Below, piece by piece: positions 18,120 to 45,271 of a stretch of 64,000 bases of DNA. The notes under the pieces were generated by a model. The model searched no databases and was not told the origin of the DNA. It worked only from the letters and a program-made list of their open reading frames with translations. Within the stretch, counting starts at the first letter, position 1; the number at the start of each line of letters is the position of its first letter. The stretch is from positions 26,784,001-26,848,000 of the forward strand of contig OX638164.1 in NCBI GenBank assembly GCA_951804945.1, written 5' to 3'. The DNA is from Podarcis cretensis (Eukaryota). A program made the translations under genes and the position numbers.

Positions 18120-18497
18120 GTAAAAGGGCCCCTGGATGGTTAAGTCCAGTCAAAGGCAACTATGGGGTTGCGGCGCTCAACTCGCTTTCAGGCTGAGGCA
18201 GCCAGCGTTTGTCCACAGACAGCTTTTCCGGGTCATGTGGCCAGCAGGACTAAACCGCTTCTGGAGCCACAGAACCCACCATGACAGAAGCCAGAGTGTA
18301 CAGAAATGCCGTTTATTTTCCTGTCGCAGTGGTACCTATTTATCTACTTGCACTGGCGTGCTTTCAAACTGCTAGGTTGGCAGGAGCTGGGACAGAGCAA
18401 CAGGAGCTCACCCCTTTGCTGGGATTCGAACCGCCGACCTTCTAATCAGCAAGCCCAAGAGGCTCAGTGGTTTAGACCACAGCACCATCTGCGTCCA
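18120..18497 (-). mobile_element. Sauria SINE
   Basis: CCTATTTATCTACTTGCAC core and GGGATTCGAACC B-box in reverse. Confidence 0.85.
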
Positions 18498-20439: not shown

Positions 20440-23400
20440 ATGGACAGCAGCTTCCCCACTTCCTTGCTGGTGGTGGCAGGGCTACTGAGACTGGCTGGTG
20501 AGTAAGAGTGGTGGAGAAATTTGTTTTAATATGAACCTTCAAAATTTGTAACATCTCCAAATTTGCCAATGCACTTCCGCAACCAAGGAATGCATACAGA
20601 AATGTGTAGGTTAGCGAAAGATGCACATGAAATGGTATGCATTAGAAGAAATTACAAAAATGTTTCTCATTAGGGGAAACATTGCTTGCAAAGCATATAC
20701 TAGGTAAAAATACATACTGAAATGTGCATGTTAGTGGACTTGCAGAAAAACACGTGCAGATTTTAATGCAGTTTTCTCGTTAAAAGTTACAAACTGGTGC
20801 AGAAATGGGGAGAACTGAACTCAATATTGGAAAAAAGAAACAGAGAAACTGAAATGAACATACTTGTCCATGCCTCACTTCTTGTTTCTCTGTAGGCTTA
20901 TTTCAGCTACATAAATGTCACAACTCAGTGCTTGAATTTGCTATTATTATATACAATATGATATTCATCCATTCAGCCATCTGTGGAGCGTTCATTTGCC
21001 TTGTGTGTTTGCAATTAGCAGATGCAGTGCTAATTTTCTCCAACAGTTTTCTGCCCTCTTGAACTCCTGATCTTGAACTCCACTGTAGCATGTTCTCTGT
21101 GTCCCACAGGGTGAGACAGCTAGCAGATTTGCTGATCTCAGAAGTCACCGCTTGAACACTGTTTACATTTTTTTGCAAAGTGCACATATTCCACTTGCCC
21201 CTGCTAATGGCACCCACCTGGATTTCTGGGAGCACAAATGTGAAGCCTTGGCAAAATGCACTGATGCGCTTTTTTGCGCGGCAGAGTTTAACCTTCTAAT
21301 CATGAGGCTCAATGAAGACCTTGGGGATGTCAACAGCTGCTACAGTAGCAGATGTGTGATACGGGGGGAAAAGAGAGGTGGTTAAAAAGATGGTCCAGAA
21401 ATTTAAAATAATGCTTGATTTTGATTTGGAGATCTCAGGGGGATAGGTATCACTTTATGTGTTGTTTGTTTCGGACTTGGCTGGTGAAACAAAGCAGCTG
21501 TAAGCCAACTTTATGTTCCCACTTAAACCAGACTTACAGCCACTTTGGGCCTCTGACATTGTGCAGCGAAATCCCTTCAACGGAAGCACGGACATTTATG
21601 AGGATTTACTGGGGTAGTTTTTATCAAGATCAATTTTGGGTGAAGGAACCTGTCATTCAGTTGTGTGCTACTACTGGGGAAATATTACTGGGATTGCTGT
21701 AATGATCATTTAGGGCCCTGCCAATTGGAGAGTTCCATTAACAAGACTCAGTTTGGCACCAGTTGCTTACATAAGAATATGTTAAATTCATTGGGTGTGG
21801 GTAGGTTCATCAATGGCTGTTTTAACATAGCCATTCATTCCAGCTGCCTCTATTTACCTGCAATCTACGTTTTCTGGTCCCTGCCTCTGGCGAACCACAG
21901 CCTGAGTTTTCTCCCCAGTTTTTCCTTTAGGGGACGCCTTGTTAAAAATGTGAGCTACATTTACTAGGTTTGGCAATCTTCAGAGGTTGGAACATAACCT
22001 GCCACACACACTTACATACCAGGATCTCTAAACATGTAATCTTAGAGTGAGTGACAAATGGATACATCATTTTTATTTATTTAAAGTAGGCAGGTGATTA
22101 GCTGTGGGAGGAGCTTATCAGAGCTTGCAGGGTAGCGCCGTGCGCCTAGCAGCGCGCGCAGTTTGATCCATCTTTAAATTTAGGGGAGCTAGTCTCAAAC
22201 GTTTCTTGGGGGAGACCTAGGATTTTTTTGGGGGGAGTTATTTGTCCTGTCTGCACGCTTCTTATGATGGAGGACCACTGTAGCCAGCCCCAATGACATG
22301 TTCTCAAGATGGAGAGTGAGGGAACAGCTGCAGTCGCCTGTGGTTCCTGCACAATGTTTGCCATCTTGCCAAAGGTTGCAGGCAGCTTTACCTGCAGCAA
22401 TTGCATGTTGATTGCACTCTTAAAAGACAAAGTCCAGCAACTGGAGGAACGTGTGGCTACGCTCCAAAGAATTAGAGAGCTGGAGCTCTTCTTGGAAGCA
22501 ACAGAGCACACTGTCTCCACCAAGGAGGAGACAGGGGACTCCCGAGAAGGAGGCTAGTTCACCAACACAGGAGCCAGATATATGGAGAAACGTGACTCAA
22601 AGAAGTAGAAAGCCCAGGGTTCGCTCTGATTGTTTAGAAATACACAATCGCTTTGAGGTCCTCTCCCCTAGCATGGAAGACGAAGAACAGACTCCATTTG
22701 AGGATCTCTCCCTCGTTACAGTCGATCAGGTATATGAAGACGAGCAGCAAAGTCAGTCCTCAGGGAATGTGCAGGCGACCTTGGAACGGACAGATCACGG
22801 AAGAACCCCGACCAAACCTAAGAGGAGGCGTGTAGTGGTGATAGGGGATTCCCTACTGAGGGGAACAGAAGCAGTGATCTGTAGGCATGACAAGATGTTT
22901 CGGGAAGGGTGCTGTCTCCCTGGGGCTAAGATCCAAGATGTAACTGAATGACTGCAAGGAATCATAAAACCCACTGACAAATACCCCTTCCTCTTGGTTC
23001 ATGTGGGAACCAATGACACTGCAAGCAATAGCCTCCAGAAGATCAAAAGAGACTATGAGGCTCTGGGCAGGAAATTGAAGCAATTAAATGCTGGCTTCGC
23101 AAATGGTGTAAACAGGAACGGTTTGGATTCTTAGATCACGGACTGCAGTTTCTTGAAGATGGACTTCTGGCAAGCGATGGGCTGCACCTCACAACGGTTG
23201 GGAGGAATGTTTTTGCCAAAAATCTCAGAAACCTCATCAGGAGGGCTTTAAACTGACTAATGTGGGGGAGGGAGACAGTGCTCCTGAAGGTAGGAGTCTA
23301 TCAATTGATGAAGATGATCATCCAAATGTCATAGACCAAATGGAGCAAACAGCACGCAGACCTAGTGGTGGGAGGAAAAAATCCTTAAATAAGAGACACG

Positions 23401-26400
23401 GGGGAATGATTAATGGACTTCAATGTCTGTACACTAATGCGCAAAGCATGGGTAATAAACAAGATGAGCTTGAGCTCTTGGTACAGCAAACTAAATATGA
23501 CATAATAGGCATCACTGAAACCTGGTGGGATAAGTCCCACGACTGGAATGTAATAATGGAGGGATACAATCTATTTCAGAGAAACAGACCAGACAAGAAA
23601 GGAGGAGGAGTGGCGTTATATGTCAGGGATGTGTATACCTGTGAAGAGATCCAAGATTTAGAACCTCAAAGCCAAAGTGAGAGCATTTGGGTCAAAATTA
23701 AGGGAGAGAAGAATAACAGGGACCTCATTGTGGGAGTTTACTATAGATCCGCAAGCCAAACGGAGGACATAGATGATGCCTTCCTGGAACAGATGGCCAA
23801 GCATGCAAAAGGAAGGGAGATAGTAGTAATGGGGGACTTCAATTACCCGGATATTTGCTGGATGTCAAACTCAGCCAAGAGCATAAGTTCAAACAGATTC
23901 CTCACTGGCCTTGCAGACAACTTCATTGTCCAGAAAGTGGGTGAAGCAACAAGAGGAACAGCCATTTTAGATCTGGTCCTAACCAATGTTGATGACCTGG
24001 TTAGTGGGGTAGAAGTGGAAGGATCATTAGGCGCGAGTGATCATGCTCTTCTGAAGTTTACTATACAGCGGAAAGGAGCAGCCAAGCATACTAGGACTCA
24101 ATTTCTTGACTTTAAGAAAGCCGACTTAGGGAAGTGCTGGGTGAGATCCCATGGACAGTAATACTAAAAGGAAAGGGAGTTCATGATGGCTGGGAGTTTG
24201 TTAAGAGGGAGATAGTAAAAGCACAACTTCAGGCCATACCAATGAGACGGAAACATGGAAGGTGCCTAAAGAAGCCAGGGTGGCTATCTAAAGAACTTTT
24301 AACTGAGTTAACATTAAAAAAGGATGTGTACAAAAAATGGAAAAGGGGGGAAAGCACCAAAGAGGAATTCAAAGAAATAGCCAGCACGTGTAGACACAAA
24401 GTCAGAAAAGCTAAAGCACAGAATGAACTCAGGCTTGCCAGAGAGGTTAAAAGCAACAAAAAAGGCTTTTATGGGTATGTTCGTAGCAAAAGGAAGAACA
24501 AAGAAACAGTGGGGTCACTCAGAGGAGAAGATGGTGAAATGCAAACAGGGGACACAGAAAGGGCTGAACTCCTCAATGCCTTCTTTGCCTCAGTCTTCTC
24601 CGATAAAGAAAACAATGCCCGACCTGAAGAATTTGGAGCAAATGATTCAGCAGAAGAAACACAGCCCAGAATAACTAAGGAGATAGTACAAGAATACTTG
24701 GCAAGTTTAGATGTATTCAAGTCTCCAGGGCCAGATGAACTGCATCCAAGAGTATTAAAAGAACTGGCAGATGTGATCTCAGAGCCACTGGCAGTCATCT
24801 TTGAGAATTCCTGGAGAACAGGCGAAGTCCCGGCAGACTGGAGGAGGGCAAATGTTGTCCCTATTTTCAAAAAGGGGAAAAGAGAGGACCCAAATAATTA
24901 CCGCCCAGTCAGTCTGACATCAATACCAGGGAAGATTCTGGAGCAGATCATTAAGCAAACAGTCTGTGAGCACCTAGAAAGGAATACTGTGATCACCAAT
25001 AGTCAGCATGGATTTCTGAAAAATAAGTCATGTCAGACTAACCTGATCTCATTTTTTGACAGAATTACAAGCCTGGTAGATGAAGGGAACGCAGTGGATG
25101 TAGCCTACCTTGATTTCAGCAAGGCATTTGACAAGGTGCCCCATGATATTCTTGTAAAGAAGCTGGTAAAATGCGGACTTGACTATGCTACCACTCAATG
25201 GATTTGTAACTGGCTGACTGACCGAACCCAAAGGGTGCTCATGAATGGTTCCTCTTCATCCTGGAGAAGAGTGACTAGTGGGGTGCCACAGGGTTCTGTC
25301 TTGGGCCCGGTCTTATTCAACATCTTTATCAACGACTTGGATGATGGACTCAAGGGCATCCTGATCAAATTTGCAGATGACACCAAACTGGGAGGGGTGG
25401 CTAACACCCCAGAGGACAGGATCACACTTCAAAACGACCTTGACAGATTAGAGAACTGGGCCAAAACAAACAAGATGAATTTTAATAGGGAGAAATGTAA
25501 AGTATTGCACTTGGGCAAAAAAAATGAGAGGCACAAATACAAGATGGGTGACACCTGGCTTGAGAGCAGTACGTGTGAAAAGGATCTAGGAGTCTTGGTT
25601 GACCACAAACTTGACATGAGTCAACAGTGTGACGCGGCAGCTGAAAAAGCCAATGCAATTCTGGGCTGCATCAATAGGAGTATTGCATCTAGATCAAGGG
25701 AAGTAATAGTGCCACTGTATTCTGCTCTGGTCAGACCTCACCTGGAGTACTGTGTCCAGTTCTGGGCACCACAGTTCAAGAAGGACACGGACAAACTGGA
25801 ACGTGTCCAGAGGAGGGCAACCAAAATGGTCAAAGGCCTGGAAACGATGCCTTATGAAGAACGACTAAGGGAGCTGGGCATGTTTAGCCTGGAGAAGAGG
25901 AGGTTAAGGGGTGATATGATAGCCATGTTCAAATATATAAAAGGATGTCACATAGAGGAGGGAGAAAGGTTGTTTTCTGCTGCTCCAGAGAAGCGGACAC
26001 GGAGCAATGGATCCAAACTACAAGAAAGAAGATTCCACCTAAACATTAGGAAGAACTTCCTGACAGTAAGAGCTGTTCGACAGTGGAATTTGCTGCCAAG
26101 GAGTGTGGTGGAGTCTCCTTCTTTGGAGGTCTTTAAGCAGAGGCTTGACAACCATATGTCAGGAGTGCTCTGATGGTGTTTCCTGCTTGGCAGGGGGTTG
26201 GACTCGATGGCCCTTGTGGTCTCTTCCAATTCTATGATTCTATGATTCTATGATTCTATGATTCTAAAGTATTTCAGCTTTAATTTATAATATTGCATAA
26301 TCCAACAATACAATACAATGAAGTCACACGATTCATATAAATATCAGTTGTATGTTCCATTGGTCCAATCATGCGAAGAATAAAAATAGTGCACCTATTG

Positions 26401-29400
26401 TGATATACATATGTTATGTATAGGTTCGTAACAAAATGAGACAAAATGGATAACGACAAAGACAATGATGGATGCATCTTCTCTCATGCACATCCATGCA
26501 CAGGAATGTGCATGAACACTAAAGCCTTTGTGGGTTGCCATTTGTTATCCAGTCAATCAGGTTCTGGGTCCTGGAGGGAAGAGGGGAGGGTGCTGATGGT
26601 CTGTCCAAGTGGGACAGGAGCAGTTGGGTGATCCGAAAGAGGGCAGGGGAGCAGAACCATTATTACAGATGATAGAGGTTTAAAAACTGCTTTTTCTTTG
26701 CCCCCGACTGCTTATTGCAAACAAATGCAACAAACTGCTTCTTCTTCTTTTAAACAAATTTAATTGGTGGGATTGCAGCTTGCACCTTCTCCTGGAGTTT
26801 CTTTGAAATGTAAAGGCAACCAGGGAGGGCTACAGATAAGTTGCTTGGACTTAGGAGCAAGTCTGAGCCTGGTGGCCTGGGATTGGCCCTCAAGAGTCAG
26901 GTGATCGGATGCCCAGGCAGGCTGATGCTGCAGCCTAGATGGCACTCTCCGAGCACAGGGTTTGGTGTTTCCTGGTTTGCAGAGAAGGAACAAAGCAATG
27001 GTGTCACTGGAGCCCAACCACAAACTGCATTGGCTCTGATTCTCCTCTGGGTGCCTTACAAGAAGTGCAAATTCAGCCTGGAAGTCAGAGACTGTGTTTG
27101 TTTGTTTAGAACATGTATAAACAGCTTGGTCAAAAAGTTTTCCAAGCCGAATTGGGGGCAAAACACAGCTAAAATCCACTGTCCATTTGCATCCACCATG
27201 TGTATGGATACTCTGATCTACACACCAGCATATTTTTTTTAAAAAAGTAGAATATAAATATTCAATACTAAAACTGCACTGCGCTAAAGGCAACTAAATC
27301 ATCCTGAAATTTCAGCCCTCCCTAGTTGCCTTTACATTTCAAAGAAACTCCAGGAGAAGGTGCAAGCTGCAATCCCACCAGTTTAATTTATTTTGAAGAA
27401 GAAGTGCAGCAGACTCATCCCTACAGAGGACAGAGGTTTAAAAACTGCTTTTACTTTGCCCCCGACTGATTATAGCAAACCCAACAAACTGCTTTAACAC
27501 ACTGCCTTTTTCTTCTTCTTTTGGTATGATTTTAAAGGGTTTTTAGGTGCCACCAAGAGTGAACTTTGGTCCAGTCCCTCTGCAGACAGAAACTTGCTTG
27601 GTGACGGCCTGGTGACAGCCAAGATTTCAAGGACTGAAGATGACACAGAAAAAGTGACACTTCAGTTTGACAGCTTGACATCAGACCTTGCTAATCAGGA
27701 TGTTTCTCATTTTCATGAAGTCAGTGGAACGGAGGTGGAAGCAACCTCAGAAGATGGAGGCCAGACACTTCCTGTTCTTGCTACAAAGCCGGCAAGCCCC
27801 AAACAGTTCTTGGATGGAGCCATTTTGGATCCCCAAAGCAAAGCTCCCATCACCAGCCAGTCCTTGTTTACAGGCATGCCAAAGTCAAAAGCAACATCCT
27901 TCAGTTCCCTGCTGGAACGGTTGGTAACACCGCTGTCTAGGGAAGAAGGAAAAGCAGAGGCAACATCTCAGGAGCTCAGCATGACTCCGAAGCAGCCTGC
28001 CTCCACCCCCAGCAAGGTGGTAGCGATGGGTGTGATTGCAACTGTGCTGCCTGATTCAGAGCCCTCAGGAAGTGCCAGGCAGAGGGTAGAGTTGTCTATC
28101 AACCCTTCTGTAGTGGCAGCAACTACCTTTGTTTTCACTGAGAACAGAACAGACACTGAAGGATTCCCTGCAGAAACCATGCAGACCCCTGCCAAGAAAG
28201 GGATGGCTAAATTGTTAACATTGATCCCCAAAGCTAGCCAATGGACTCAAGCTGAGCATCAACAAACCCAGTTGGATATGAGAACTTCAGTTGTTGGCAG
28301 CACTCCAGGTCTCCTGGAGCAGACACAGAGTCCATCCCTTAGGGGGAGCTCCACAGTTCTCTTCCATCAGTCTTTTTCAGAAGAGAAAATGACAATCATT
28401 CCCAGGACAGAGTTGACACAGCCTTCCTCCTCGGCTTCCTCTCCATATAGAGAGATGGTGCTGGAAGATGAAACCATTGAGTTTAGAACGGCTGAAAACC
28501 CTGCCCGTCTAACTGCTTCTCAAAGTAACACCCTCTCTTCCTCATTGTTGGTGACTCCAAACACACTCTCTTCAGAATCCCCACCACACTCTGCCAGGCC
28601 AAGGGACACCAGCCAAAGTGTTCTGCCCAAACTTCTCTTTGTGCCGCAGTTTTCCTTATTCAGTAAATCAGGGACATCTGATGAATCAGAGGAGCATCTT
28701 CAAGATGGTTTAATTTTGCACCACGAGACTGATCATCAGACAGCTACCCAGACTTCCCATGTCAGGCTTTCTCAAACTGTTGGTGAGCCAAGAAGAACAC
28801 AGGCTGTCCCTAATCTGCAAGAAACCACTCTTGTGGGCTGGCCAAAGTCATCTCTCCCACTCCACTCCACTGCACAACCACTGGACATTACTTTCCTGGT
28901 TGATGACAAGCCACAGGTAAGCATGCTTGGCATGCCTCAGCTAGCCCACCCAACATCAGCTCGTTCTGGACCTGCAGTGTCAAGCATGGGTATCTCTTCC
29001 ACTGTTGCATCGCCATCAGACACTGTGTCTGCCCCTATTGGTTACATTATGCAAGGCACATCCAAATCTCAACTGCCCAACACGTTTTTGACAGTCCATG
29101 GAGAGCGACCATCTCCCAGTGCTCTTGTTCCATCTCTTAGTGAGTCAGAATCATTGGATACATCTGCTCTCACCAAGCCAGAGACTCATGGCACCCATGA
29201 AGGGCAAAAGAGACCTGTTTCACTTGTTTCTCCTTCTTCTGCTGAACATGAGTCAGAACCATCAAGTGTGGCTTCGGCTTCTGCCTTTCCACATGCTGGA
29301 TTTAGCACATCAGTTGTGGCAGAGTCTTCCCAATCTGAGCCCAGGCAGTCAGTGTTGCCAACTCTTGTACCCAGTGAATCACAGAGAACAGTGTCAGGCA

Positions 29401-32400
29401 CATCTGTGCCATTCCAAGCTCAGCAGCAACTGCTAGGCAACTTTGCTTCTACTCATACTAGAGCAACAGCCTCAGGGTCACTTGTTCCTTTTCGTGTTGA
29501 ACCAAATGTGTCAGGCACATCTGCTGCTGGCCTGAATGTCTCAGGCACCACTTTCCTTGGCCATAGCTCTCAAAAACTGTCACCAGATACGTCTGTCTCT
29601 TTTTACACTAAGGCACCCTCCCTGCCTGCCCAATCATTGCAACCACAGAGCATCCATCCTCATGCTAGTGGTGAGCTGCAAATGGGTATCTCAGGCACGA
29701 ATGTGCCATCACATGCCAAGTCGCAAATGTCTGCCTCTTTTATTGATGAGTCCCATCTTTCGGTCACATCTGCCCGTGTTGAGCCAGTGACAAATGAGGC
29801 ATCCTTGGAACAAGGATTGCCAATCTCTGTTGATGCCAAACCACAGATAGCAGGGTCTTCTGCCTCTTCTCCCACCGAGTCACAATTGCTAGTGGTGTCT
29901 GCCCATGCCCCCATAGAACATGAGTTCTTGGATGCCTTGGGGAAATTGCGGGGCCTACCCCAAAATGAGAGTAACCCACCAAAAACACGTTCCTCTACCC
30001 CAGCACAGCACCCTTCACTTGAAATGACTTTCCTTGGCCATCTCAAGTCAAGACTATCCAATGCCTCTGCCTTTGTCCATGCTTTATCCCTGTTACCAGA
30101 AGCACCAACCTCTACAGGTGCTGAAACCCAGATGCCAAGTAGACTCACATTTGTCCATCCTGGTTTGCAACTTCAAGCTGCACCTGGTCTTCCCACGACT
30201 CCTCACACTGCTGAGAAAGTGAGTGAAGGAAAACACTCTCCACAAACCAGCCTTCCAACACCTCAGTCTGGCACTCGAGGGACAACTGTGCAGGATGTTT
30301 CTATCCCTGCCTCCTCAAGGAGAAGTCCTCCTAGTTCAGATAGTCCAGCCTCTCCTATCAGCCACCAAACCAAAATAAACATTCCCCTTCCACTGGCTCA
30401 CAAGGTGGAGGAAAACATCACCAGCCTGAGGACAACACCAATGCTGGTGGTGGCTGGTGCTCAAGATCTCATTCAAAGCTCCTTGGGGTTCTTTCAACAC
30501 CTCAGTCGACCAGATATTGGAAGTCTTGACTCTTTTGCCTCTAGTGGCATCCTGGGAATGTCTCCCTCCCTTCAGTATTTGTCCCACTTGGTCCAGAATG
30601 CTGAAAACATGGTGTGCCTACAACCTTTGCGAAACACCACCCCAACTTTGGGAGAACCAATTGCTAGTGGGCAGGAAATGCTGGTTCTGACTTCTGCCCT
30701 TGGCTTCTCCCATCCAGGGGTTTCGAGTCTGATACAAATGAGTCCATCCAGTGTCATTCTGGTTAAACCTGTGTTTGTCTTCTTACCACCAGAGGCACCT
30801 AAAGGTTATGTGCCACTTCCTACTGAGGAAGAAGTGGGCCATGATGCTAGTCTTTCATTCACCAGCAAGGCTGCTCTAGCTTTGGTTACTCCTGGTAGTA
30901 TCCAGGAGCGATTGGTGGGAATTGGTCCTCTTGTGTCCACCCTTAGACACTCCTCAAGGGCAAACACTCATTCTCCTAATTTGTTGGATCATCTAGTCAT
31001 TTCTGGGCCAGCCTCCAGTGCTTCTCCAAAGCATACAGGAGTCAGTCTGGTGAGATCCAACACTTCAACAGCCAATCCATTCCTCTATGGGTTGAGGGAT
31101 CGTAGCACTAGGACAAAGCATGGACTGACCACAGACCACAATGAAGACTTTCAGTTGTCTGCTGGAAGGCTGGAAGAGGACAATCCAGTTTCGTTATCTG
31201 CTGGAGTGCTTGTGAAGAACCATATCTCAGCTGCTCCACCAGTTATGGTGCCAATCCAGCAACAACCCAAAGCATTATCACTCACAACTGAACTGTTGAG
31301 CACCCTTGACAAGGTTTCTTCTCAGTCCTCCTTGACAGAACCCTATGCCTCTCAGATGCCAACAAGCTCCCTTCAGGCTGCAAGTAACCCCCCACTGCTG
31401 AGATCAACAGTAATGCTTCACGCTGAAGAGCATCCATATGGTTCAGTGAGCCCCATTACTCACATCAGTAAGAACTCTGAAGGGTCCTTGAGTGCATCTT
31501 CAGCTAGGAACACGAAACTGCCATTAGAAGTGGGACAACATCTTGCACCTTCAAGCTCAGCACCACGTGGCTCCTTAATCAATGAACACTTTGGAAAGGC
31601 TCCTTCTAAAGTTCATTATGTACCCAACGCGGTGTCAACTTTTCCAATGTCCTCAACTGGAAAAGAGCACAAAGAAGCTGCAGCCTTAAATAACCCCTAT
31701 GCAGAAGCATTTCTTGTGGCAAATGAAACATCTTCCTATCATACGAACATTACCTTCCCCAAGCCTTCTGATTCCCATCACATCCCATCCAAGGCCCCCA
31801 GGACAGATGAGAGCCTGGAGACACCATCTTTGTCTTCTCTGTTCTCAGCAGATGCTCTGATGCAAATGACTCTGCCTGGAAAACATCCTGAGGACATCCT
31901 GAATCATCAGACACATTCTAGACCATCTGCCGATGTTCCTTCCCAGGTAACAACACATTCCTATTCTGCCAAATTGGTTACGGAATACAATCCAACCACT
32001 GTAACGCTCAGGGGAAGGGCCTCTCTTGCAAGTGCAGCAGAACAGCTGGAACCAGTGCTGAGTGCTGTAGAAACCAAGACTTTGACAGATATTGAAACTT
32101 ACAAGCAAACCAAAGCAACTAGCTTGATGTCAACCATGCCTGGCACAGATTCTGGGCATTCATCTGCTTCACTGGTTGCCACAGATTTCAGATTAACCTC
32201 CTCCTCCCCATCATCATCATCATCATCATCATCATTATCGTCGTCATCATCATACTATGCTGCAGGATCTACAGATCATCAAAAGGAGGTTCTTCAGTCA
32301 CCTCTGCACCCTGTCCATTCATTTGCACCAAATTCTACTCTTAAAGACGTGACTCCGTCACTTGTGGGTGAAGAAGCAATGATTTTGGAAACACTGCAGA

Positions 32401-34853
32401 CTGACTCCTACAGGCTACAGCCTAGTGTAGGTGGAACAAGTGAAATGGTAGCTTCCTCACCATCAGCAAGCAAGGGCAGGTTTCTTAAACAAAGGAGAAA
32501 CAAGAATGCTGGGACTGGAGATCAGTTCCTGGTTGCATCTTACTTGCAACCTCAGCCAGCAAGTTTAGAAGCTGACCACCCTGAAATGCCCAGATTGGCA
32601 GGTGATGAACAGGGACAGGAGGAGGAGGCTGCTTCTTCCTTGCCAATCTCCTCTGTGTTTTCTACAGCTCTTAATACACCAGCATTTCTAATGACCACAT
32701 TATTTCCCAGCATTTCTGCTGATGGACTTGCTGGTAGTCTTCTAAACCAGACATCCCATTTGCAAAGTCTTCCACCGGGCACCTCTGAGATATTCCTAAA
32801 TCCTGAAGCTCAAGTCAAACCGACCCTGGGGAGCCTTTCAGATACACCTAGTATGAAGGCTGGTGGAGACTTCTCTGCAGATGCTACCAGCATCAGTAGA
32901 GGATTTAATTCATACACCTCTGAAGAGCAAGTTCCCATCACAAGTGACTCTACTGGAGGAGGAGGAAGAGAAGACTCAGTAGCTGATTTGCCACCATGGG
33001 ACCCCAATTCAACTCTGTCAGATTGGAGAGCACACCACCAGAGAGTGATGCGCTCAGATGATGTTTTCATGGATGGGTAACTATTTGGAGCTGGGGCTAT
33101 TGGAAGCCTTCCCCAACCTGGTGCCCTCCAAATATTTATGGACTGCAGCCATTGTAGTCCATAACATTTAGTAGCCCGTGGGACTTGTAGTCTAGAACAT
33201 TTAGAGGGCACCAAGTTGGGTAAGGATAGCCTCAAGCGAGAGGCAGTCATTTCAATGCTGTAGGACATGCAAAATTAAGATTACCGTACTTATGAATCGG
33301 GACAGCTTTCTGTTAAATGAGCTGTTCGGTGCTTAAGATCAGGAACTGAGGTCTTGCTTTGGGTGGCCTCACTTGTGGAAGCAAGGTGAGTGGTGACTGG
33401 GCAGGGGGCCTTGCTTAGCGAATACTGCCTCTGGACAAGGGTGAGAGGCATCTACAAGCTCCCTTCAGATATCATGAGCTGCAAATAATCCCCCATTGCT
33501 CCAGTCAGGGTTTAAAACCATTCTACACAGGGTCTAAACCACTGAGCCTCTTGGGCTTGCTAATCAGAAGGTCAGTTGTTTGAATCCCTGCGATGGAGTG
33601 AGCTCCCGTTGCTCTGTCCCAGCTCCTGCCAACCTAGCAGTTCAAAAGCACACCAGTGCAAGTAGATAAATAGGCACCGCTGTGGCGGGAAGGTAAATAC
33701 ATTTCCGTGTGCTCTGGTTTCCATCACAGTGTTCCATTGAGCCAGAAGTGGTTTAGTCATGCTGGCCACGTGTCCCAGAAAGCTGTCTGTGAACAAACGC
33801 TGGCTCCCTTGGCCTAAAAGCAAAATGAGCGTCACAATCCCATAGTTGCCTTTGACTGGATGTAACCATCCAGGGGTTCTTTATCTTTTTTTACCTTACT
33901 TTTTATAACTGTTCAAATGGTGGATCTTCAAGTGCCAGGGCTGCAGTTTATTTCATTTTCACAATATATTGATGGCTTTTCTGTTTCATTCCTGCGACTT
34001 CCCCACACCCCAAATGGCCATAATAGCAGAATTTTACAAGTGGCAACTGCAACAAAATGTGGCAGTGTGTCCTCCTCATCCATTAACAGGATGCCTCTGT
34101 TCACAGTGCCAGACAGCCATGTCCTCAGGGTTATTTCATTCCATGCTCACTTGATTTTCTATTTTCTTTTCCATGTCCAGCATTCCTCAGCTATTGAGCA
34201 CATTCGCTTCTCATTAGCCCCCACCCAACCGCCGTGCTTCCTTAGATTATTTTTTGTTTAAGATTATTGTTTTTGCTCTTTTTATTTATTCATTCATTCA
34301 TTTTGCAAAGCAGATGTTCTAATACTGAGCTACACTCTTTCCCCAGATATTTCCTCCTCCCCCTTCATATGCAAATAATCATTTTTTATTATTATTAACA
34401 GCCTAACCAAAGAGTGGTAACTAACAATGTTCTGCTGCCGTTTTCAGTTTACAAAAGCGGAGTGTTGATGCAGTTGGGCTGTGGAGGCGTATTCCCTTTT
34501 GCAATTCTTTTTGGTGGGTTTTTTTTGTCCTTTTGAAATTCAGCAGGGAGACTGAATATCTGTGGTTGCTCATAATAAATTAGGGCATCTTTCAGAGCCT
34601 CGTGGAAAGACCAGCAGATTTATTGTTCCATCAACTTTCATGGACTAACATCCCCTTTATCAGATGCAGGAAGGATTGTTGTTACTTTGGAGGCATATAT
34701 GTATTATATAAAAAAGGTAAAGGTACCCCTGCCCGTACGGGCCAGTCTTGACAGACTCTGGGGTTGTGCGCCCATCTCACTTAAGAGGCCAGGGGCCAGC
34801 GCTGTCCGGAGACACTTCCGGGTCACGTGGCCAGCGTGACATCGCTGCTCTGG

Positions 34854-34902
<49 letters not shown>

Positions 34903-37763
34903 CGCACACGGAAACGCCGTTTACCTTCCCGCTGGTAAGCGGTCCCTATTTATCTACTTGCACCCGGAGGTGCTTTCGAACTGCTAGGTTGGCAGGCGCT
35001 GGGACCGAGCAGCGGGAGCGCACCCCGCCGCAGGGATTCGAACCGCCGACCTTTCGATCGGCAAGTCCTAGGCGCTGAGGCTTTAACCCACAGCGCCACC
35101 TGCGTCCCCATGTATTATATAGTGAGATGTTAAAGGAAAACAATTGGGCTTTGGAAGGGATATTTGTAGTTTAGCCTTCATTTGGGGGGATAATCCCCAC
35201 CTCCTTCCCCACTCACACTCCCTCTCTCTTTCTCTCCACTCAGCTATGCGGTTGTGTCTGACGATGCCTGTGGCTCTGGCAACTACACTGCGGAGATGAG
35301 CCTACAGGCTGTAGCCATGGGCAAGACTCCATCTCTCCCTAACAATTTCCTGGCCCAGATCGTTCTGCAGGACAACAGAAGCCGCCCGACTCTGAGCGTC
35401 AAGTCGTGCTGTGTTACGCCCACCTCCAGGCCTGTGGGTCCAGAGGCTGCCTGCTGTCTTTTCCCCAGGTCAGATGGGGAAGCAACTTGAGGCTGAAGGA
35501 TGCTTGGGGTGAGGCGGGAAATGGATGCTCCAGAACCTACCTTTGTCTGGGGCATCAGGGACTATAGAAAGGGATGCTGTCTGTTGTCTTGGTGGCGGTG
35601 GGGAGTGCATGGATTTGGCCTTAGATATTCAGGATGTAATTGACAGCCGTATAGGGATGCGGGTGGCACTGTGGTCTAAATCACTGAGCCTCTTGGGCTT
35701 GCCGGTCAGAAGGTCGGCGGTTCGAATCCCCGTGACAGGTGAGCTCTGTCCAGCTTCTGACAACTTAGCAGTTCAACACCAGCAGTGGTGGTGTTGGTGC
35801 AACAATCAGGCCAGTGCAAGTAGATAAATAGGTACCACTGTGGTGGGAAGGTAAACAATGTTTCCATGTGCTCTGGTTTCTGTCATGGTGTCCGTTGTGC
35901 CAGAAGCAGTTTAGTCATGTTGACCACGTGACCCGGAAAGCTGCCTGTGGACAAACACCGGATTTCTTGGCCTGAAAGTAAGATGAGCACCACAACCCCA
36001 TAGTCGCCTTTGACTGGACTTAACTGTCCAGGGGCCCGTTACCTTTACCTGGACAGCCATATCTGAGTTCAGGAAGGCATTGCTCCCATGTCAAATTGGT
36101 TAGAGGCCCGGCGGGGGGGGAGGAGTTTTTACCTTTCCCCATTTATGCTTGGCCTGGCCTGATGGTTGCACCAACACCACCACAAACGCATAGACAGAGC
36201 TTCTGGGAAAAGGGAACAAGATGGACTTTCATTTATTTATTTATTATGCTTATGAGACGCCGTATAAAATTAAATCCTGTGAGAGTTGTACAAGATTAAA
36301 TGAATGACTGAATGAATGAAACGTCATCATGATTACTGGTTGCACTTATTAGTTGCTTTTCTAAAACCAAAACCAAAAGGTCTCCCCTGTCTCCCTGTAC
36401 AGTGGTACCTCGGGCTAAGTACTTAATTCGTTCTGGAGGTCCGTTCTTAACCTGAAACTGTTCCTAACATGAAGCACCACTTTAGCTAATGGGGCCTCCC
36501 GCTGCTGCCATGCCGCCGGAGCACGATTTCTGTTCTTATCCTGAAGCAAATTTCTTAACCTGAAGCACTATTTCTGGGTCAGCGGAGTCTATAACCTGAA
36601 GCGTATGTAACCTGAAGCGTATGTAACCCGAGGTACCACTGTGCTGTTCTGAAGGTTCCCCAGGCACACATATCCCTAGCCAATTCAGGGGACACACAGG
36701 ACAGGCTGGGAACGCCCTATTACGCTAATGGAAGTCCTTGCATAGGTTTCCACTGGGAGGACTTGTTACTGTAGTTGAATCTGGTCTGGGAATATTATGG
36801 TGAACAGCAAGAGTGGGAAAATTGGGGGTGGGGTCAAAAGTTGCAGAACGGATCAACTCTGAAATCCAGAAGTAAGTCCTATTGAATTTAGTGGGTCTTA
36901 CTCCCAGGTAAGAGGGGTTGGGCTTGCAACATTAGGCTGTTATCTACATCCTTTGGTGCAACAGCCGTGAAATTCCCAGCCTCTTCCAACAGCTGATTTG
37001 TCTGCTGCAACCCTAACAGCTTATTCAGAACCTGTGCCAACTGTTAGCAGGAACCTCCCCCACACACAATCCATAGGTGGCAAATGGTCATTTTGGCTGT
37101 TCGCCTGTATCTTTGTGCCAGATGCAAATCCATTTGCCCTTGGCCTCGACTACATGAGGACAAATTCATTAATTCATGGTGACTTTCCTTCACTGTCCTT
37201 ATCCGTACGTGAAGGCTTAGGGGTGGCTTGCCAGCAGGAAGGATCACTTCTGCCATGTTGTCAGCCGAAAGAGGATCAAGGGAATCATAGAGAACCCACA
37301 CAACATCTGGCTGAGTCTGCTTAGCAAAATCACCTTGACTTTTAATTTTTTTAAAAAAGGAGGGATTTCTCCAGCCCTGGGCAAACACTCTTTTCCATAA
37401 TGCAATAAGACCCCCATTGGCAGTGACCCCAATGACTGCTGAAAGAGCATGGCTGTTCAGATCCAGCCACATCAGCAAATCGTAGGAATATCATAAGAAC
37501 CAACCATCTATGTAATCTGGAGAGCTGTCAAAGGTATGCTACCTCTGAATATGGGGTTTTCATTCCTCAGCTAATAACAGATATTGAGAGATTTGTCATC
37601 CGAAAATATATCTCATTCTCCCACCACCACCTTTAAAATCAGGAGCATCTGGGCCCATCACAGCATGTCCAGAGTTTGAATTCCATGTTCAGTTAAGGAT
37701 TCTCAACAGTCTGTGAATTTCCAGTTTGCTGATTTGGTGCATATTGAGCCGCTATGCAGGTGA

Positions 37764-37817
<54 letters not shown>

Positions 37818-40800
37818 GATCACTGAGGGAATGCACACATATTCAAGTGCTCCAGAACAGCAAATCCCAAACAGTCAACTTCACCATCCAGCTTTTTCAG
37901 ATGGTGAGCCACGCTGTGGCTTATCTGCACTGTGAACTCAGTGTCTGCCTGAGTGACGATGCTGGATGTGAACAGGTGAGTTCCGTTAGAAGACAGAGGA
38001 CCAAAGGGTGCCGCTAGAGTCTTTCAAGAGGTGTAAGGGTAGAAAATAGAAGCACTGTGTAATTTACTCCTCTTTTAGTTTGTTGGCAAGGGTGCAAGCT
38101 AAGGCATCTATCTGAGCTGAGCTGAGCTGCCTTAGTAGCAGCTCAGGTTTAGCAAATATTCTCTAAGCAGCTGATGTCTACGCAGTTGTTATGCTACCTA
38201 GCAGCTGAGTTTTAGCAATGATCGTTTTAAACAATTATGAGGGGGAAAGGTGCTGAAATTCTGTAAGCAGGTGTATGAGTGTGTGTGAAGAAACTAGCCT
38301 ACTGTACAAAGGTAACATTTGCATTTTCTGCTTCACTCATCTTCCGGCCCTCACCTCCCCCTCCTCCACTGACATGTGACCCTTGGGAGGTTGCCCAGAA
38401 AAGAATAGGGTACCTCTGAGCATATCCAGAATTCCTCTCCTTCCAAAAGTGTCTGCAGGATTTGGGGAACAAAGGGAAGACACTTTTAGACATGACATCC
38501 AAACCAAATTATCAGGTGGTAATTACCACCCTGACTTATTTCCTTGCTTTATTTAATGTGTTATCTTTCTCCCCTTCCTCTCTTCTCCAATTGCTGTTCT
38601 GTAACCAAGTCCTGCCACAGACCGCCATTCTAGAAACCAAAGAAGCTGTGGATAAAAATAAATCCTTTTGCTGAACCTTGCATCTCTGCAGAGGAGAATT
38701 TAGGGGAGCATGACCAGCTTGGTCACCCAGAGTGTGGACTTTCAGGGGTGCCACAGGGCATAGGAGCCAATTCTTAGGAGTTGTGGGGGCTTCAGCCCCC
38801 CACAATAAAATATTTGAGGGGGCCGGGCCCCCATAAAAATGATGGGCATCCCCTTTCAAATAGTGTGTCTGTGCACTATGTCATGTGATCAACTATGTGC
38901 GGCAGGGCTTACCTGGGCCCCCACAATATTTTATTCAGGGCTGCAGGGGAAGCTGCAACTATTATTTAGAATGTAGCTTGAGAGGCGGGGGGTGCTGAAT
39001 TATTGGATTGCACAGGGCACTGCTGAAATATAAGGCCCCAAGTTCCCCTACTGCGCTCTGAGCCTTAATGGTGGTTCTTTCCCCTTTCCAATTTGTGTGG
39101 GTGTTTTAATGTTGTACTTTCAATGGATAAATAATGTGATAATAATAAACTGAGCTGCAGCCTCCACGTTGAATAATCCTTCCATTTCCTTCCCAGAGCT
39201 GCTTAAGTACCCTCTCCAAGTCAAGCAGCAGGGATAGTTACCAAACCCGCCACAACATAATCTCCTTCGGACCGGTTCCAAAGACCCAGGTAGAGTTTAC
39301 ACCTGGACCAGTTACAGGTGTGTGTGTGTGTGTGGTCTGTGTTCTTCATTCTTCCCCTTGCCTCAAGGTTTCCAGGTAGCAACTAGAGAATTGCACAAGT
39401 CTAGCAGCTAGAGCCTTCTGCTGCCAAGGTGTTTTGGACCACAACTTCCATCACAGCCCTAGTCAGCACATCCCTCTGCTGCTGGGACATATCATAGAAT
39501 TACAGAGTTTGAAGGGACATGAGGATCATTTATTCCAGGCCCCTGCAATGCAGGAATCTTTAGCCCAACGTGGGGCTTGAACCCACAACCCTGAGATTGT
39601 GAGTCTTATGCTGTACTGGCTGAGCTATCCAACTGGTGGTCTGATGGGAGTTGCAGTCCAACATACCTGGTGAGCATCAAGTTGAGGAAGGCTGAATATG
39701 CTCCTGCCAACCTAGCAGTTCGAAAGCACGTCAAAGTGCAAGTAGATAAATAGGTACCGCTCCGGCGGGAAGGTAAACGGTGTTTCCGTGCGCTGCTCTG
39801 GTTTGCCAGAAGCGGCTTAGTCATGCTGGCCACATGACCCAGAAGCTGTACACTGGCTCCCTCGGCCAATAAAGCGAGATGAGCGCCACAACCCCAGAGT
39901 CGGCCACGACTGGATCTAATAGTCAGGGGTCCCTTTACCTTTACCTGGTATACACCTGGTGAGCACCAAGTTGAGGGAGGCTGAATTTGCTCCTTGGATC
40001 TGGGTAACGGATTTAAGTCTAACTTCTGCCATGAGTTTGGTGGATAACTTTGGGCAAATAATTCTCCCACAGTTGCCTACCTGTGAAACTCTTGCAGGGT
40101 TGCTGGGATGTACAGAGAGATGTGCAATGCATTCTTGAAGCAGGAGAGAGAAAAGACATTCCCTATAAATGATAAATATGAGCAATATACTAGCTGCTGG
40201 CTTTTCCTAGGGTTGCAACAAGGTCATCAGAAAAGGAGTGCTTGAAGGGACATCATCACAGGTTGAGAAGCGGGGATTAAAATTAGGTTTGCTTATCCAG
40301 CTAATCCCCTCACCTTTGCACCCCTGCTGTGGGCGAGAGCAAAGGACTCAACAGCCTTAGGCTGGGTTCGTTTGTTCCAGCTGCATATTTCTTATGGCTT
40401 GATCCCATGCATATTTCAGCAAAAGTGAGCCCTGCAGGATTTGAGTTCTACTATCTTAGGGATGAAGGGATGTGGGTGGCACTGTGGGTTAAACCACAGA
40501 GTCTAGGACTTGCCTATCAGAAGGTCAGCGGTTTGAATCCCCGCGACAGAGTGAGCTCCCGTTGCTCGGTCCTTGCTCCTGCCAACCTAGCAGTTCAAAA
40601 GCACGTCAAAGTGCAAGTAGATAAATAGGTACCACTCCGGCAGGAAGGCAAATGGCGTTTCCGTGTGCTGCTCTGGTTCGCCAGAAGAGGCTTTGTCATG
40701 CTGGCCACATGACCCGGAAGCTGTACGCCGGCTCCCTCGGCCAATAAAGCAAGATGAGCGCTGCAACCCCAGAGTCAGTAACGACTGGACCTAATGGTCA

Positions 40801-42454
40801 GGGTCCCTTTACCTTTACCTTTATCTTAGGGATGATGGGTCTGATTTCTAAGCATGACCTTCTCTTCTGCCAGCATTCAAGGATTGACATGCACACAAAT
40901 GAGTGAAGGGTGGGGGGGGGGAGGACATGCATTCACAAACACATGCACACAAACATGCACACAAACATGCACACAAACCCCACACACTCAGTGGTGGCTG
41001 GTGCCCATTAGGAGTGGTGGGGTACAGAGCTATGTTCTTGATCCCCCTTGATCCTTTTCTGCTGCAGAATATTTTTTACATGCCACCACAATTTCTGAGT
41101 GGCAAGCTCAGGGTTTGGTTTCCTTGGAATGAAGGTCAGCAGAGAATATGGTGTCTCTGGGATACAGTCGTACCTCGGAAGTTGAACGGAATCCATTCCA
41201 GAAGTCTGTTCGACTTCCAAAATGTTCAGAAATCAAGGCGCGGCTTCCGATTGGCTGCAGGAAGCTCCTGCAGCCAACTGGAAGCTGTGGAAGCCACGTT
41301 GGACGTTCAGCTTCCAAAAGAACATTCGCAAACCGGAACACTCACTTCTGGTTTTGCGGTGTTTGGGAGCACAAACATTCGAGTCGCAAGGCGTTCGTCA
41401 ACCAAGGTACAACTGTACAGTGGTACCTCGGGTTAAGAACTTAATTCGTTCTGGAGGTCCGTTCTTAACCTGAAACTGTTCTTAACCTGAAGCACCACTT
41501 TAGCTAATGGCGCCTCCCGCTGCCGCCACACTATCGGTGTGCGATTTCTGTTCTCACCCTGAAACAAAGTTCTTAACCCGAGGTACTATTTCTGGGTTAG
41601 CAGAGTCTTTAACCTGAAGTGTCTGTAACCTGAAGCATCTGTAACCTGAGGTACCACTGTATATGGTTTTATTTACACATGCATGCCACCTGAGCATAGG
41701 ATGGAGGTGCTCACAGCAACAACACCCCAACAGATCTTGCTTGTCCCCAGGTTCCCAGGGGAGCCCCTGCACAGAGCAAAACATGCCTCAGTGTCTCCAT
41801 CTTACACTCACCAACTCTATTGTTTTCCTATGTTGCAGCTCAGTGAGGGCGGTGGGGGAAAGCCAGCCCATTAGGCTGTAGAGCACCATGGCTGTTGTTG
41901 CAGCTCTTGCAACATCTTTGAGATGCTGGAGAAGGCAAAATGGCCATTACCTTAACACAGGGACTGATTGGGCAGGTTCTGCAGCCTCTTCAACTAGATT
42001 CTAACTCTTACTGGATTGCAGGCCTGGAAGGGATTCAAGGATATCATCCAGGCTGACCCCACAAAACCCATAACAGCATCTGTCTCCTCGTGCTGGCCAA
42101 GTGTTCAGGATTTCAGCTTCTCCATCACATGGGGTCCTGGATTGCCACTGCCAGTCCTGCATCTTGGGTTGGCACTTTGTTCTCACCTGCGGGGAATTTT
42201 AAGTTTACATGTCTGCAATACGGGGGACACCTAGGAAAGAATTACTACCACGTTGCAACATTGGCCAATCCCACCCAACTCTCGTTCCATTTATCTTTCC
42301 AGGCTCTGACATGACCATGATGCTCCCTGCTCTTCTAGGCTTATCGACCGGCATTGTTGTCTTAACGTCTGTCGTCGTACTTCTCTGGTTGTATCGGAAG
42401 CGCCAAATCAAAATGGCAGCAGCCTTGGAGCCCCAAAGAATGGAAGCTCCTTGA
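20440..42454 (+). CDS. Uncharacterised type I membrane mucin with C-terminal ZP-C domain (uromodulin-like ZP-C), about 2083 aa, 6 coding exons
   Basis: Exons 20440-20497 ([20 protein letters not shown], donor GTGAGT), 27538-33076, 35244-35468, 37819-37975, 39197-39317 and 42303-42454(TGA). Phases 1,2,2,0,1 are all compatible, and the total of 6252 nt is divisible by 3. ZP-C motifs [50 protein letters not shown] and ISFGPV; [26 protein letters not shown] followed by RKR. Confidence 0.82.
22089..26265 (+). mobile_element. Near-full-length CR1 LINE (disrupted ORF1 and ORF2)
   Basis: ORF1 from 22309 (CxxC..CxxC, coiled coil, [15 protein letters not shown] esterase motif); ORF2 23262-26173 (APE endonuclease [25 protein letters not shown] and FADD); (ATTCTATG)n tail; TSD AAAGTA (22083-22088, 26266-26271). 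Confidence 0.96.
27538..33076 (+). CDS. Giant S/T/P-rich mucin-like exon (exon 2 of the ZP-C gene)
   Basis: Uninterrupted ORF of more than 1800 codons; acceptor TTTAAAG at 27537 (alternative in-frame AG at 27546); donor GG|GTAACT at 33077. Confidence 0.9.
33528..33898 (+). mobile_element. Sauria SINE (older)
   Basis: GCAAGTAGATAAATAGG core and degenerate TTACCTT tail. Confidence 0.85.
34711..35109 (-). mobile_element. Sauria SINE (young subfamily) with (GCCAGA)8
   Basis: Near-identical to 12472-12843; 12-bp TSD ATGTATTATATA (34699-34710, 35110-35121). Confidence 0.93.
35244..39317 (+). CDS. ZP-C domain exons 3-5 (35244-35468, 37819-37975, 39197-39317)
   Basis: Cys pattern and motifs align by eye to the uromodulin/GP2-type ZP-C, including internal (NYTAEMSL) and external (IISFGPV) hydrophobic patches. 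Confidence 0.85.
35653..36050 (+). mobile_element. Sauria SINE
   Basis: Head GGGATGCGGGTGGCACTGTGG, GGTTCGAATCCC, TTACCTTTACCT tail. Confidence 0.88.
36400..36641. mobile_element. Tc1/mariner-type MITE (CAGTGGTACCTCGGG TIRs)
   Basis: TIRs CAGTGGTACCTCGGG..CCCGAGGTACCACTG with TA at the left flank. Other copies at about 6331-6470 (partial), 41418-41659, 45272-45513 and 47466-47698. Confidence 0.85.
39700..39945 (+). mobile_element. 5'-truncated Sauria SINE
   Basis: Core and CCTTTACCTTTACC tail. Confidence 0.85.
40467..40821 (+). mobile_element. Sauria SINE
   Basis: Full length, TSD TATCTTAGGGATGA on both sides. Confidence 0.9.
41165..41659. mobile_element. Two abutting Tc1/mariner-type MITEs sharing a TA
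   Basis: TA-CAGTCGTACCTCGG..CAAGGTACAACTG-TA-CAGTGGTACCTCGG..GAGGTACCACTG-TA. Confidence 0.85.
42303..42454 (+). CDS. Terminal exon of the ZP-C gene: transmembrane helix plus about 19-aa cytoplasmic tail
   Basis: TTTCCAG acceptor, phase 1, about 24 hydrophobic residues followed by an RKR stop-transfer signal, TGA at 42452-42454. Candidate AATAAA at 43801. Confidence 0.8.
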
Positions 42455-44545: not shown

Positions 44546-45271
44546 GATGATCATACCCTTTTGTATATATGGAAAACGTTACCACCCAGCTCTTCTACAA
44601 AGCAGGCAAACACAAGGCATCAAAATCAGTAACATCGCTATTGAAGCACGCCTAACAACACATGCAGTGTATTCATTCGTTTATTTAAAAACTTACAGTG
44701 TCAACAGAACGAAACAGTTAGAGACCGACTGAAATAGGATAAATGCAGAAAGAGCAGCCCCCTGCCCCACACTTGACATTTTATATTTATATTTATCCAT
44801 CTCCATCAGGTTACACTCAGATATATTCCTCATTAGGAGAGACAACCTCTTAAACTCCTCATGCCCTGAAACTAGAATAAACTTGTTTCAGGATTTGATT
44901 TCACTTCTTCAACCCTATTTGACCCCCAAAAAGGCAACGCGGCAGCCATTATACTACAACAAATCTAAACCTTGGTTCGATCAGGAATGCCTCACTATGA
45001 AGCGCTCTTTGTTGGGAAATACATCTCCATCAAAGCACAGTACAGGAATAAATAAACGGGGCAGATATCTTCCCCAAGAAACATACAATTTAATGTTTGA
45101 CTGTGAGGAGTAGAACAGACAGGGTGAGAGAAGGATGGCTAAGAGCTTCTTTCAATGGCCTTCAGCACTTGTGGGTCTTCAGATGGGCCAAAATAGCTCA
45201 CTTGAAGGCAGAAAAATCTCCCCACCCAGACAGGATTATCACACTGGAGAGGCCTCTGTGTGTGTACTGTA

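Follow-up and report, generated by a model that had tools for sequence, protein, structure and literature searches.

A predicted membrane protein gene with a lone ZP-C domain and a long mucin-like stalk between TTC12 and ANKK1 of the lizard Podarcis cretensis

Gene structure and genomic position

The window analysed here, a stretch of 64,000 nucleotides (nt) of Podarcis cretensis (assembly GCA_951804945.1, contig OX638164.1, positions 26,784,001 to 26,848,000), carries a six-exon gene whose product is predicted to comprise a signal peptide, a long stalk rich in Ser, Thr and Pro, a ZP-C domain without a ZP-N, a transmembrane helix and a short tail. Its neighbours are TTC12 and ANKK1, whose exons were located by tblastn with two fused public models, one of Phrynosoma (P0029, TTC12 and the ZP-C gene) and one of Mergus (P0019, the ZP-C gene and ANKK1). 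The placement of these exons (Table 1) sets the ZP-C gene within the TTC12-ANKK1 interval and on the same strand, as an earlier note on this DNA, made from the sequence alone, had proposed. NCAM1 and DRD2 lie outside the window. The mis-fused models of Phrynosoma and Mergus point to a like neighbourhood of the gene in another lizard, an iguanian, and in a bird, a duck.

The gene comprises one giant open frame on the plus strand and, downstream of it, smaller open frames with clear ZP-C motifs. The gene model was based on the window sequence and orthologous public models. All introns, the junctions of which were read directly in the sequence, are of the GT...AG type with a pyrimidine tract, the intron phases are 1/2/2/0/1, and the four split codons encode G, G, R and G. 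The exons sum to 6252 nt, which corresponds to 2083 amino acids (aa) and a stop, with no internal stop codon. The splice sites, the phases and the residue count agree with the six phase-compatible exons, free of stops and frameshifts, that the same note had described. At junctions 2-3, 3-4, 4-5 and 5-6 the protein joins are identical to those of LOC144325710 (P0002), a RefSeq model from Podarcis muralis. Exon 1, which is missing from the public models of Podarcis and Pogona, could be aligned in its full length of 19 residues to the N-terminal ends of the orthologues from alligator, ostrich and manakin (pattern M...FP..LL..AGLL.L.), and the signal peptide that it encodes has the hydrophobic core SLLVVAGLL.

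Exon 2 contains 1845 in-frame codons without a stop, for which our arithmetic gives a chance of about (61/64)^1845, i.e., roughly 1e-39, so that its open frame is not there by chance. That the locus is decaying or non-functional, its frame kept open by chance or of recent origin, is very unlikely and borders on the negligible. The very fast evolution of the stalk, which retains 34% identity between lacertid and gecko, is what such a view could invoke; against it stand 2083 stop-free codons with canonical splice sites throughout, a ZP-C that is 40-65% conserved over the distance between fish and sauropsids, with invariant Cys residues, and a gene tree that follows the species tree. The locus thus holds a vertebrate gene that is intact, present in a single copy and of great evolutionary age.

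The promoter and poly(A) signal mentioned in the earlier note hold as motifs, but these are consensus and pattern matches only, and we list the CCAAT, TATAAA and AATAAA sequences as candidates. The AATAAA is the first after the stop codon and would give a 3' untranslated region of about 1.35 kb. A perfect (TC)23 microsatellite ends 2 bases short of the AG acceptor of exon 4 and makes up the entire polypyrimidine tract of this acceptor; changes in its length could affect the splicing of exon 4.

The ZP-C domain

The exons of the window were searched singly, and the public orthologues P0001 (Podarcis lilfordi), P0002 and P0034 (Pogona) were used for the tests of the whole domain. The Pfam profile PF00100 matched exon 4 of the window with an E-value of 1.5e-5 (25.6 bits at a cut-off of 24.6) and the orthologues with 26-33 bits, the match of the ostrich protein spanning profile positions 2-128 of 133. 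Pfam indicated no domain besides ZP-C in the orthologues tested. When compared with the sequences of solved structures in PDB, the family profile aligned to residues 452-585 of uromodulin (UMOD) with an E-value of 4e-8; this alignment begins at the internal hydrophobic patch strand, ends at the last Cys and covers the whole ZP-C. GP2 was the only other, weaker match. Sequence kinship with betaglycan, endoglin or TGFBR3L was looked for and not detected: phmmer and hmmsearch with the family profile against the PDB sequences (E-value up to 10) gave UMOD and GP2 only, and the betaglycan structures 3QW9, 4AJV and 8DC0 were left unmatched.

The motifs of the domain are distributed over three exons. 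Exon 3 encodes the motif AVVSDDxCGSGNY, the strand NYTAEMSL of the internal hydrophobic patch, the counterpart of which in UMOD is GTGMFTVRMAL, and the motifs SCCVTP and CC. The FTIQLFQM...GCEQ region of exon 4 aligns with YLHCEVYLC...C of UMOD, and exon 5 encodes the external hydrophobic patch HNIISFGPV, of which NIISFGPV aligns with VLNLGPIT of the UMOD patch. Ten Cys residues of the ZP-C are conserved; as read off the alignments, six are at the positions of the ZP-C Cys residues of UMOD and four are extra.

The fold was tested with the model of the Pogona orthologue, rather than with the joined window protein. For the 261-aa Pogona isoform P0034, AlphaFold with a 23-row family alignment gave a model with a predicted local distance difference test score (pLDDT) of 72.8, and the best Foldseek match of this model was the UMOD precursor structure 4WRN (E-value 1e-6), followed by betaglycan ZP-C, GP2, ZPD, ZP2 and ZP3. 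The external patch was modelled as a strand of the ZP-C (P0034 residues 192-199, pLDDT about 83). Matches in the ESM Atlas were confined to generic ZP-C, cuticlin and CUZD1 clusters. Results of these analyses indicate that exons 3-5 encode a complete ZP-C of the UMOD type, with both hydrophobic patches kept; the ZP-C recognised in the earlier note is in this way confirmed by the PF00100 match, by the profile alignment to UMOD and by the AlphaFold and Foldseek results for the orthologue.

Beyond the ZP-C, the lizard protein differs markedly from UMOD and GP2. It has neither ZP-N nor interdomain linker, no EGF domains and no site of the RFRS type before the external patch, and it has a transmembrane helix, four extra Cys residues in the ZP-C and an upstream stalk of about 1850 aa. 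The anchor of UMOD and GP2 is glycosylphosphatidylinositol.

Absence of ZP-N

Searches with Pfam for ZP-N were negative in all eight family members examined and in all ten open frames of intron 2, and no ZP-N was found in the window; the ZP-C without ZP-N that the earlier note had predicted is thus confirmed at this level. A complete ZP module is distinguished by a ZP-N upstream of ZP-C and by a polybasic site before the external patch. Both are absent from the window gene, where the linker between the last Cys of ZP-C and the external patch contains no RxxR or dibasic motif, and the same holds for birds and crocodilians.

The possibility that the gene model is incomplete, and that unrecognised exons for a ZP-N or for other domains give the real protein a full ZP module, deserves attention. 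Intron 2 has 2.2 kb, and errors are frequent in the public models of this gene, which may be fused to TTC12 or ANKK1, run on into introns or be without the first exon. For instance, two stretches are skipped in the P. lilfordi model P0001, namely the equivalent of window positions 28916-29640 and the final 50 aa of exon 2; the alligator model P0027 reads through the exon 3 donor; and, of the Pogona models (P0063 and P0034), the X1 model is without the signal peptide exon, while the X2 model of 261 aa comprises ZP-C, transmembrane helix and tail only and starts in apparent intron 2. Nevertheless, an incomplete model has only a slim chance of being the explanation. Of the 2167 nt that make up intron 2, about 780 belong to two copies of a short interspersed nuclear element (SINE), and in all well-modelled orthologues from sturgeon to birds the stalk is joined directly to (F/L/H)AVVSDDxCGSGNY. 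A ZP-N needs four Cys residues, and the single Cys in exon 2 is too few to hold one. The negative Pfam results for the family members and the intron 2 frames argue in the same direction.

The earlier note had also called the architecture unusual, as ZP-C normally follows directly after ZP-N. The absence of ZP-N here agrees with this, but a lone ZP-C in a membrane protein has a precedent in TGFBR3L (PMC8673766).

Stalk, membrane anchor and basic site

Ser, Thr and Pro constitute 16%, 9% and 9% of the exon 2 stalk, respectively, i.e., 34% in total, and are spread evenly along its length (27-40% per 150-aa block). The stalk contains 13 N-X-S/T sequons and a single Cys. Tandem Repeats Finder revealed no tandem repeats in exon 2 beyond one 15-copy run of Ser codons. 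The amino acid sequence of exon 2 is 92-93% identical to that of other Podarcis (P. muralis and P. lilfordi) and 34% identical to that of the gecko, and a search with exon 2 led to a P. lilfordi protein with 91% identity. The term "membrane mucin" used in the earlier note is a loose one, as tandem repeats are absent; with 34% of Ser, Thr and Pro and without such repeats the stalk may be described as mucin-like at most, and not as a proven mucin. We would expect the stalk to be extended and heavily O-glycosylated.

One region within exon 2, referred to here as the stalk island, is kept in squamates, crocodilians and birds. Besides a hydrophobic stretch it includes the exon's single Cys, and the L, C, L, L, S, L, P and F columns of its alignment are invariant. 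A small domain or a relic of ZP-N was considered and rejected for it: AlphaFold with a 26-row alignment gave a pLDDT of 53, a predicted template modelling score of 0.18 and no confident fold. In view of this model, the island is treated as a conserved linear region.

The core of the transmembrane helix comprises 19 aa with a mean Kyte-Doolittle hydropathy of 2.44, and it is followed by a cytoplasmic tail of 20 aa with basic and acidic residues. Exon 6 is 100% identical to that of P. muralis. Together with the alignment of exon 1, these features substantiate the signal peptide, the membrane helix and the short tail that the first inspection of the sequence had suggested.

A feature that the earlier note did not contain is a family-conserved basic site just upstream of ZP-C. 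In the window it is represented by the convertase-like motif RVMR, placed 11 residues ahead of the exon 2 end and about 17 ahead of the first Cys of ZP-C. Throughout the family a basic cluster is found at this fixed position, which lies 12-20 residues N-terminal of the first ZP-C Cys. The motifs are RRMMR, RRPTR, RRSLR, RRLRR and HRRRMR in other squamates, (H/R)QRR in most birds, RQRS or HQRS in ostrich, tinamou, crocodile, parrots and pigeon, RRMR, HRRR, LRR and HRSR in teleosts, and KR in sturgeon. By its sequence and position, this cluster looks like a proprotein convertase site N-terminal of ZP-C, at which the protein may be cleaved.

Family, distribution and evolution

The family was defined by two region searches and by an all-length phmmer search in which exon 3 was compared with 1.84 billion representatives; the names were taken from cluster look-ups. 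It includes at least 60 members, and the phmmer search yielded 35 representative clusters. Among squamates, members were found in Podarcis, Pogona, Anolis, Varanus, Lerista, Gekko, Sphaerodactylus and Phrynosoma; other members are encoded by crocodilians, many bird orders, sturgeon, paddlefish and many teleosts, including Danio rerio. Chicken was not among the matches of the family search. The all-length phmmer search and the two region searches gave no member from mammals, amphibians or turtles, which is a non-detection and not proof of loss. The earlier view of the gene as non-mammalian, and probably lost in mammals, is compatible with this result as far as mammals are concerned; however, with sturgeon, paddlefish and teleosts among its members, the family is older and wider than the non-mammalian tetrapods.

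In the region search with E-values up to 10, all 51 of the 51 matches were family members, the weakest at 6e-25, which indicates that among proteins sharing short words the family is sharply separate from other ZP proteins. UMODL1 or other paralogues were not detected in this search, which requires shared 5-residue words, and distant paralogues may therefore be invisible to it. The maximum-likelihood tree of the region from ZP-C to the C-terminus follows the species tree, with support of 100/100 for the division between fish and sauropsids and of 98/98 for squamates, and with palaeognaths and neognaths as separate groups within birds; this fits single-copy orthologues. The ZP-C of the lizard is 44-65% identical to those of birds or sturgeon, and the stalk is at most 34% identical (gecko). 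As judged from these sequence comparisons, the constraint concerns the sequence in the ZP-C foot and the length and composition in the stalk.

The orthologues bear automatic names only, namely mucin-17-like, mucin-5AC-like, proline-rich protein 36-like, uromodulin-like 1, GP2-like and uncharacterized LOC, and our literature search found no paper on this gene family, which appears never to have been studied. The earlier description of the gene as poorly characterised is in line with this. What the analysis reveals is a vertebrate gene family, unstudied and of wide conservation, whose members are predicted in public databases under misleading names. This is of relevance for annotation, as the public records misname the gene and some of them fuse TTC12 or ANKK1 to it.

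Proposed function and comparison with known systems

The reading that we favour, with moderate confidence, is that of a mucin-like, non-polymerising type I surface glycoprotein that has a ZP-C as its membrane-proximal foot and is split by a furin-like protease. The protein would have a signal peptide and cross the membrane with its helix, with about 1850 aa of a fast-evolving, almost Cys-free stalk outside, the ZP-C at the membrane and a short tail. Its ZP-C would stay in the closed precursor form, with the external patch retained. Lacking ZP-N and interdomain linker, and in sauropsids also the polybasic site before the external patch, the protein should not build canonical ZP filaments. Instead, the ZP-C might serve as the folded foot of a mucin-like protein on an epithelium, in a role like that of the SEA domain in tethered mucins. 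The basic site conserved upstream of ZP-C suggests a split by a furin-like convertase in the secretory pathway. Of the two products, the N-terminal one would be a large glycosylated subunit that is either shed or kept in place by non-covalent contacts, and the other a small membrane subunit with the ZP-C. O-glycosylation, the non-polymerising behaviour, convertase cleavage and the epithelial location are what we infer here from the features described above.

Tethered mucins of the MUC1, MUC13 and MUC17 type resemble this design in their overall logic: they also have a signal peptide, a long ectodomain rich in Ser, Thr and Pro, a folded foot with probable cleavage nearby, a helix and a short tail. 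In contrast to them, the lizard protein has no tandem repeats, its content of Ser, Thr and Pro is 34%, its foot is a ZP-C and not a SEA domain, and Pfam shows no mucin homology.

Several observations weigh against the interpretation of the protein as a cleaved, non-polymerising, mucin-like glycoprotein. With its content of Ser, Thr and Pro and no tandem repeats, the stalk does not reach the standard of a classical mucin domain. Cleavage may be limited to part of the family, as some archosaurs have a weak basic motif (RQRS in ostrich, tinamou, crocodile, parrots and pigeon) and the alligator model has none. In some fish, RNR or RR is found near the external patch, which makes C-terminal processing conceivable in them. 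Finally, work on LET-653 shows that a ZP-C alone is able to enter a matrix (PMC7665627).

The last point leads to a different possibility, namely that the ZP-C enters an apical extracellular matrix, alone or with ZP-N partners, and ties this matrix to the cell surface. In Caenorhabditis elegans, LET-653 localises and functions by means of its ZP-C alone (PMC7665627). Both hydrophobic patches and a Cys pattern like that of UMOD are kept in the lizard protein, and the four extra Cys residues of its ZP-C, together with the invariant Cys of the stalk island, could form intermolecular bonds. We consider a matrix-building or matrix-anchoring role improbable, as sauropsids are devoid of the polybasic site before the external patch that is the normal activator of assembly, and neither ZP-N nor interdomain linker is present. 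In contrast to the present family, LET-653 is a secreted protein that has a ZP-N and requires C-terminal cleavage; it comes from an invertebrate and is not an orthologue.

In the case of TGFBR3L, the resemblance concerns the part of the protein next to the membrane. TGFBR3L has about 290 aa and is related to the ZP-C of betaglycan; betaglycan and endoglin are not known to have a cleavage site before the external patch. TGFBR3L, a co-receptor of inhibin B, is built without ZP-N and consists of a single ZP-C on the extracellular side, a transmembrane helix and a short tail (PMC8673766). Exons 3-6 of the lizard gene likewise encode a lone ZP-C, a helix and a short tail without ZP-N. However, the present family has a long stalk and no detectable similarity to betaglycan, whereas TGFBR3L has no long stalk and is present in mammals.

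This resemblance raises the question of whether the protein is a co-receptor of the TGFBR3L/betaglycan type, the ZP-C of which binds a soluble ligand, e.g., of the TGF-beta family, and presents it to signalling receptors, with the stalk modulating access. The minimal design is the same (PMC8673766, PMC11865472), and the predicted 261-aa isoform P0034 of Pogona is composed of just these parts, although its N-terminus reads like an intron and the model may therefore be an artefact. Structures of betaglycan ZP-C are among the top structural matches, but at 12-14% identity only, and in sequence the similarity is to UMOD and GP2, with betaglycan and endoglin unmatched at E-values up to 10. The lizard protein has no cleavage site before the external patch, and none is known in betaglycan and endoglin. 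On balance, a co-receptor of this kind seems rather unlikely, and the split, mucin-like glycoprotein with a ZP-C foot is preferred.

The origin of the family may be connected with UMODL1. The name "uromodulin-like 1" is borne by short family models of Anolis, Varanus, Colossoma, Hoplias and Labeo. UMODL1, a protein with a full ZP module and with WAP, EMI, FN3, SEA and EGF domains, is encoded near RIPK4 on 21q22 of the human map, and RIPK4 is a paralogue of ANKK1; the pairs ANKK1/RIPK4 and NCAM1/NCAM2 are divided between 11q23 and 21q. The position of UMODL1 near a paralogue of ANKK1 makes a shared origin by genome duplication conceivable. A broader scenario, which as a whole we regard as doubtful, would make the ZP-C gene a fifth ancestral member of the NCAM1-TTC12-ANKK1-DRD2 cluster that was lost in mammals, and perhaps in amphibians and turtles. 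Its product would represent a new class of ZP proteins, in which the cleavage site has in effect been moved N-terminal of ZP-C and a furin-type cut frees a giant glycosylated subunit, and the gene might be the genome-duplication twin of UMODL1.

The accepted view of ZP modules is that of polymerisation units composed of ZP-N and ZP-C, and the small number of exceptions, e.g., TGFBR3L, proved to be important receptors. The family described here is a second, unrelated and much larger membrane protein family with a lone ZP-C, single-copy from ray-finned fish to birds, and its gene is situated in a cluster to which human psychiatric genetics has devoted much work. As there are zebrafish and bird members, expression, processing and the loss-of-function phenotype are directly testable.

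Repeats and other features of the window

The coordinates of the gene and of other features of the window are collected in Table 1.

Table 1. Positions of features in the window (position 1 is its first nucleotide)
Feature	Position	Strand	Description
TTC12 exons	249-13175	+	
TTC12 exon matched twice	3617-3721, 4158-4268		aa 484-520 of Phrynosoma model
CCAAT	~20226		candidate promoter motif
TATAAA	~20293		candidate promoter motif
Exon 1	20440-20497	+	ATG, signal peptide (19 aa and first base of Gly codon); phase 1 donor G|GTGAGT
CR1-type LINE	23262-26173	+	intron 1
LINE endonuclease open frame	23262-24161		299 aa
LINE reverse transcriptase open frame	24134-26173		679 aa
Giant open frame	27534-33080	+	contains exon 2
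Exon 2	27538-33076	+	5539 nt, ~1846 aa, extracellular; acceptor ttttaaag|GG, donor GG|GTAACT
Stalk island	30492-30884	+	within exon 2
Basic convertase-like motif	33042-33053	+	RVMR
(GCCAGA)8.5 microsatellite	34853-34903		intron 2
Exon 3	35244-35468	+	first part of ZP-C, 5 Cys; acceptor ccactcag|C, donor CAG|GTCAGA
(TC)23 microsatellite	37769-37815		upstream of exon 4
Exon 4	37819-37975	+	ZP-C core, 4 Cys; acceptor ctcttag|A, donor CAG|GTGAGT
Exon 5	39197-39317	+	last ZP-C Cys, linker, external hydrophobic patch, juxtamembrane stretch; acceptor ttcccag|AGC, donor ACAG|GTGTGT
Exon 6	42303-42454	+	transmembrane helix, tail, stop included; acceptor tttccag|GC
Transmembrane helix core	42329-42385		within exon 6
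AATAAA	43801-43806	+	candidate poly(A) signal, pattern match
ANKK1 exons	45767-57625	+	
Run of N	54720-54873		154 N, ANKK1 region
SINE-like element, ~360 bp, introns of ZP-C gene	33530-33890, 34701-35118 (-), 35650-36050, 39700-39946, 40460-40825		
SINE-like element, ~360 bp, further copies	12470-12845, 16640-17010, 18120-18500, 48540-48800, 50115-50486		
Second element family, ~250 bp	36395-36642, 41412-41662, 45266-45516, 47470-47700		

Intron 1 of the ZP-C gene houses an almost intact long interspersed nuclear element (LINE) of the CR1 type, in sense orientation within the gene. Its two open frames, one for an endonuclease (Exo_endo_phos, E-value 2e-17) and one for a reverse transcriptase (RVT_1, E-value 1e-34), overlap in different frames at positions 24134-24161. 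Introns 2-5 are rich in SINE copies. One SINE-like element, of about 360 bp, is present in at least 10 copies of 67-93% identity in the introns of the ZP-C gene, TTC12 and ANKK1. The inverted copy in intron 2 has a perfect (GCCAGA)8.5 microsatellite next to it or at its margin.

Two observations concern the neighbouring genes. The run of N in the ANKK1 region is located between the exons matched at 54411-54530 and 56366-57625, and one TTC12 exon is matched twice, at positions about 540 bp apart.

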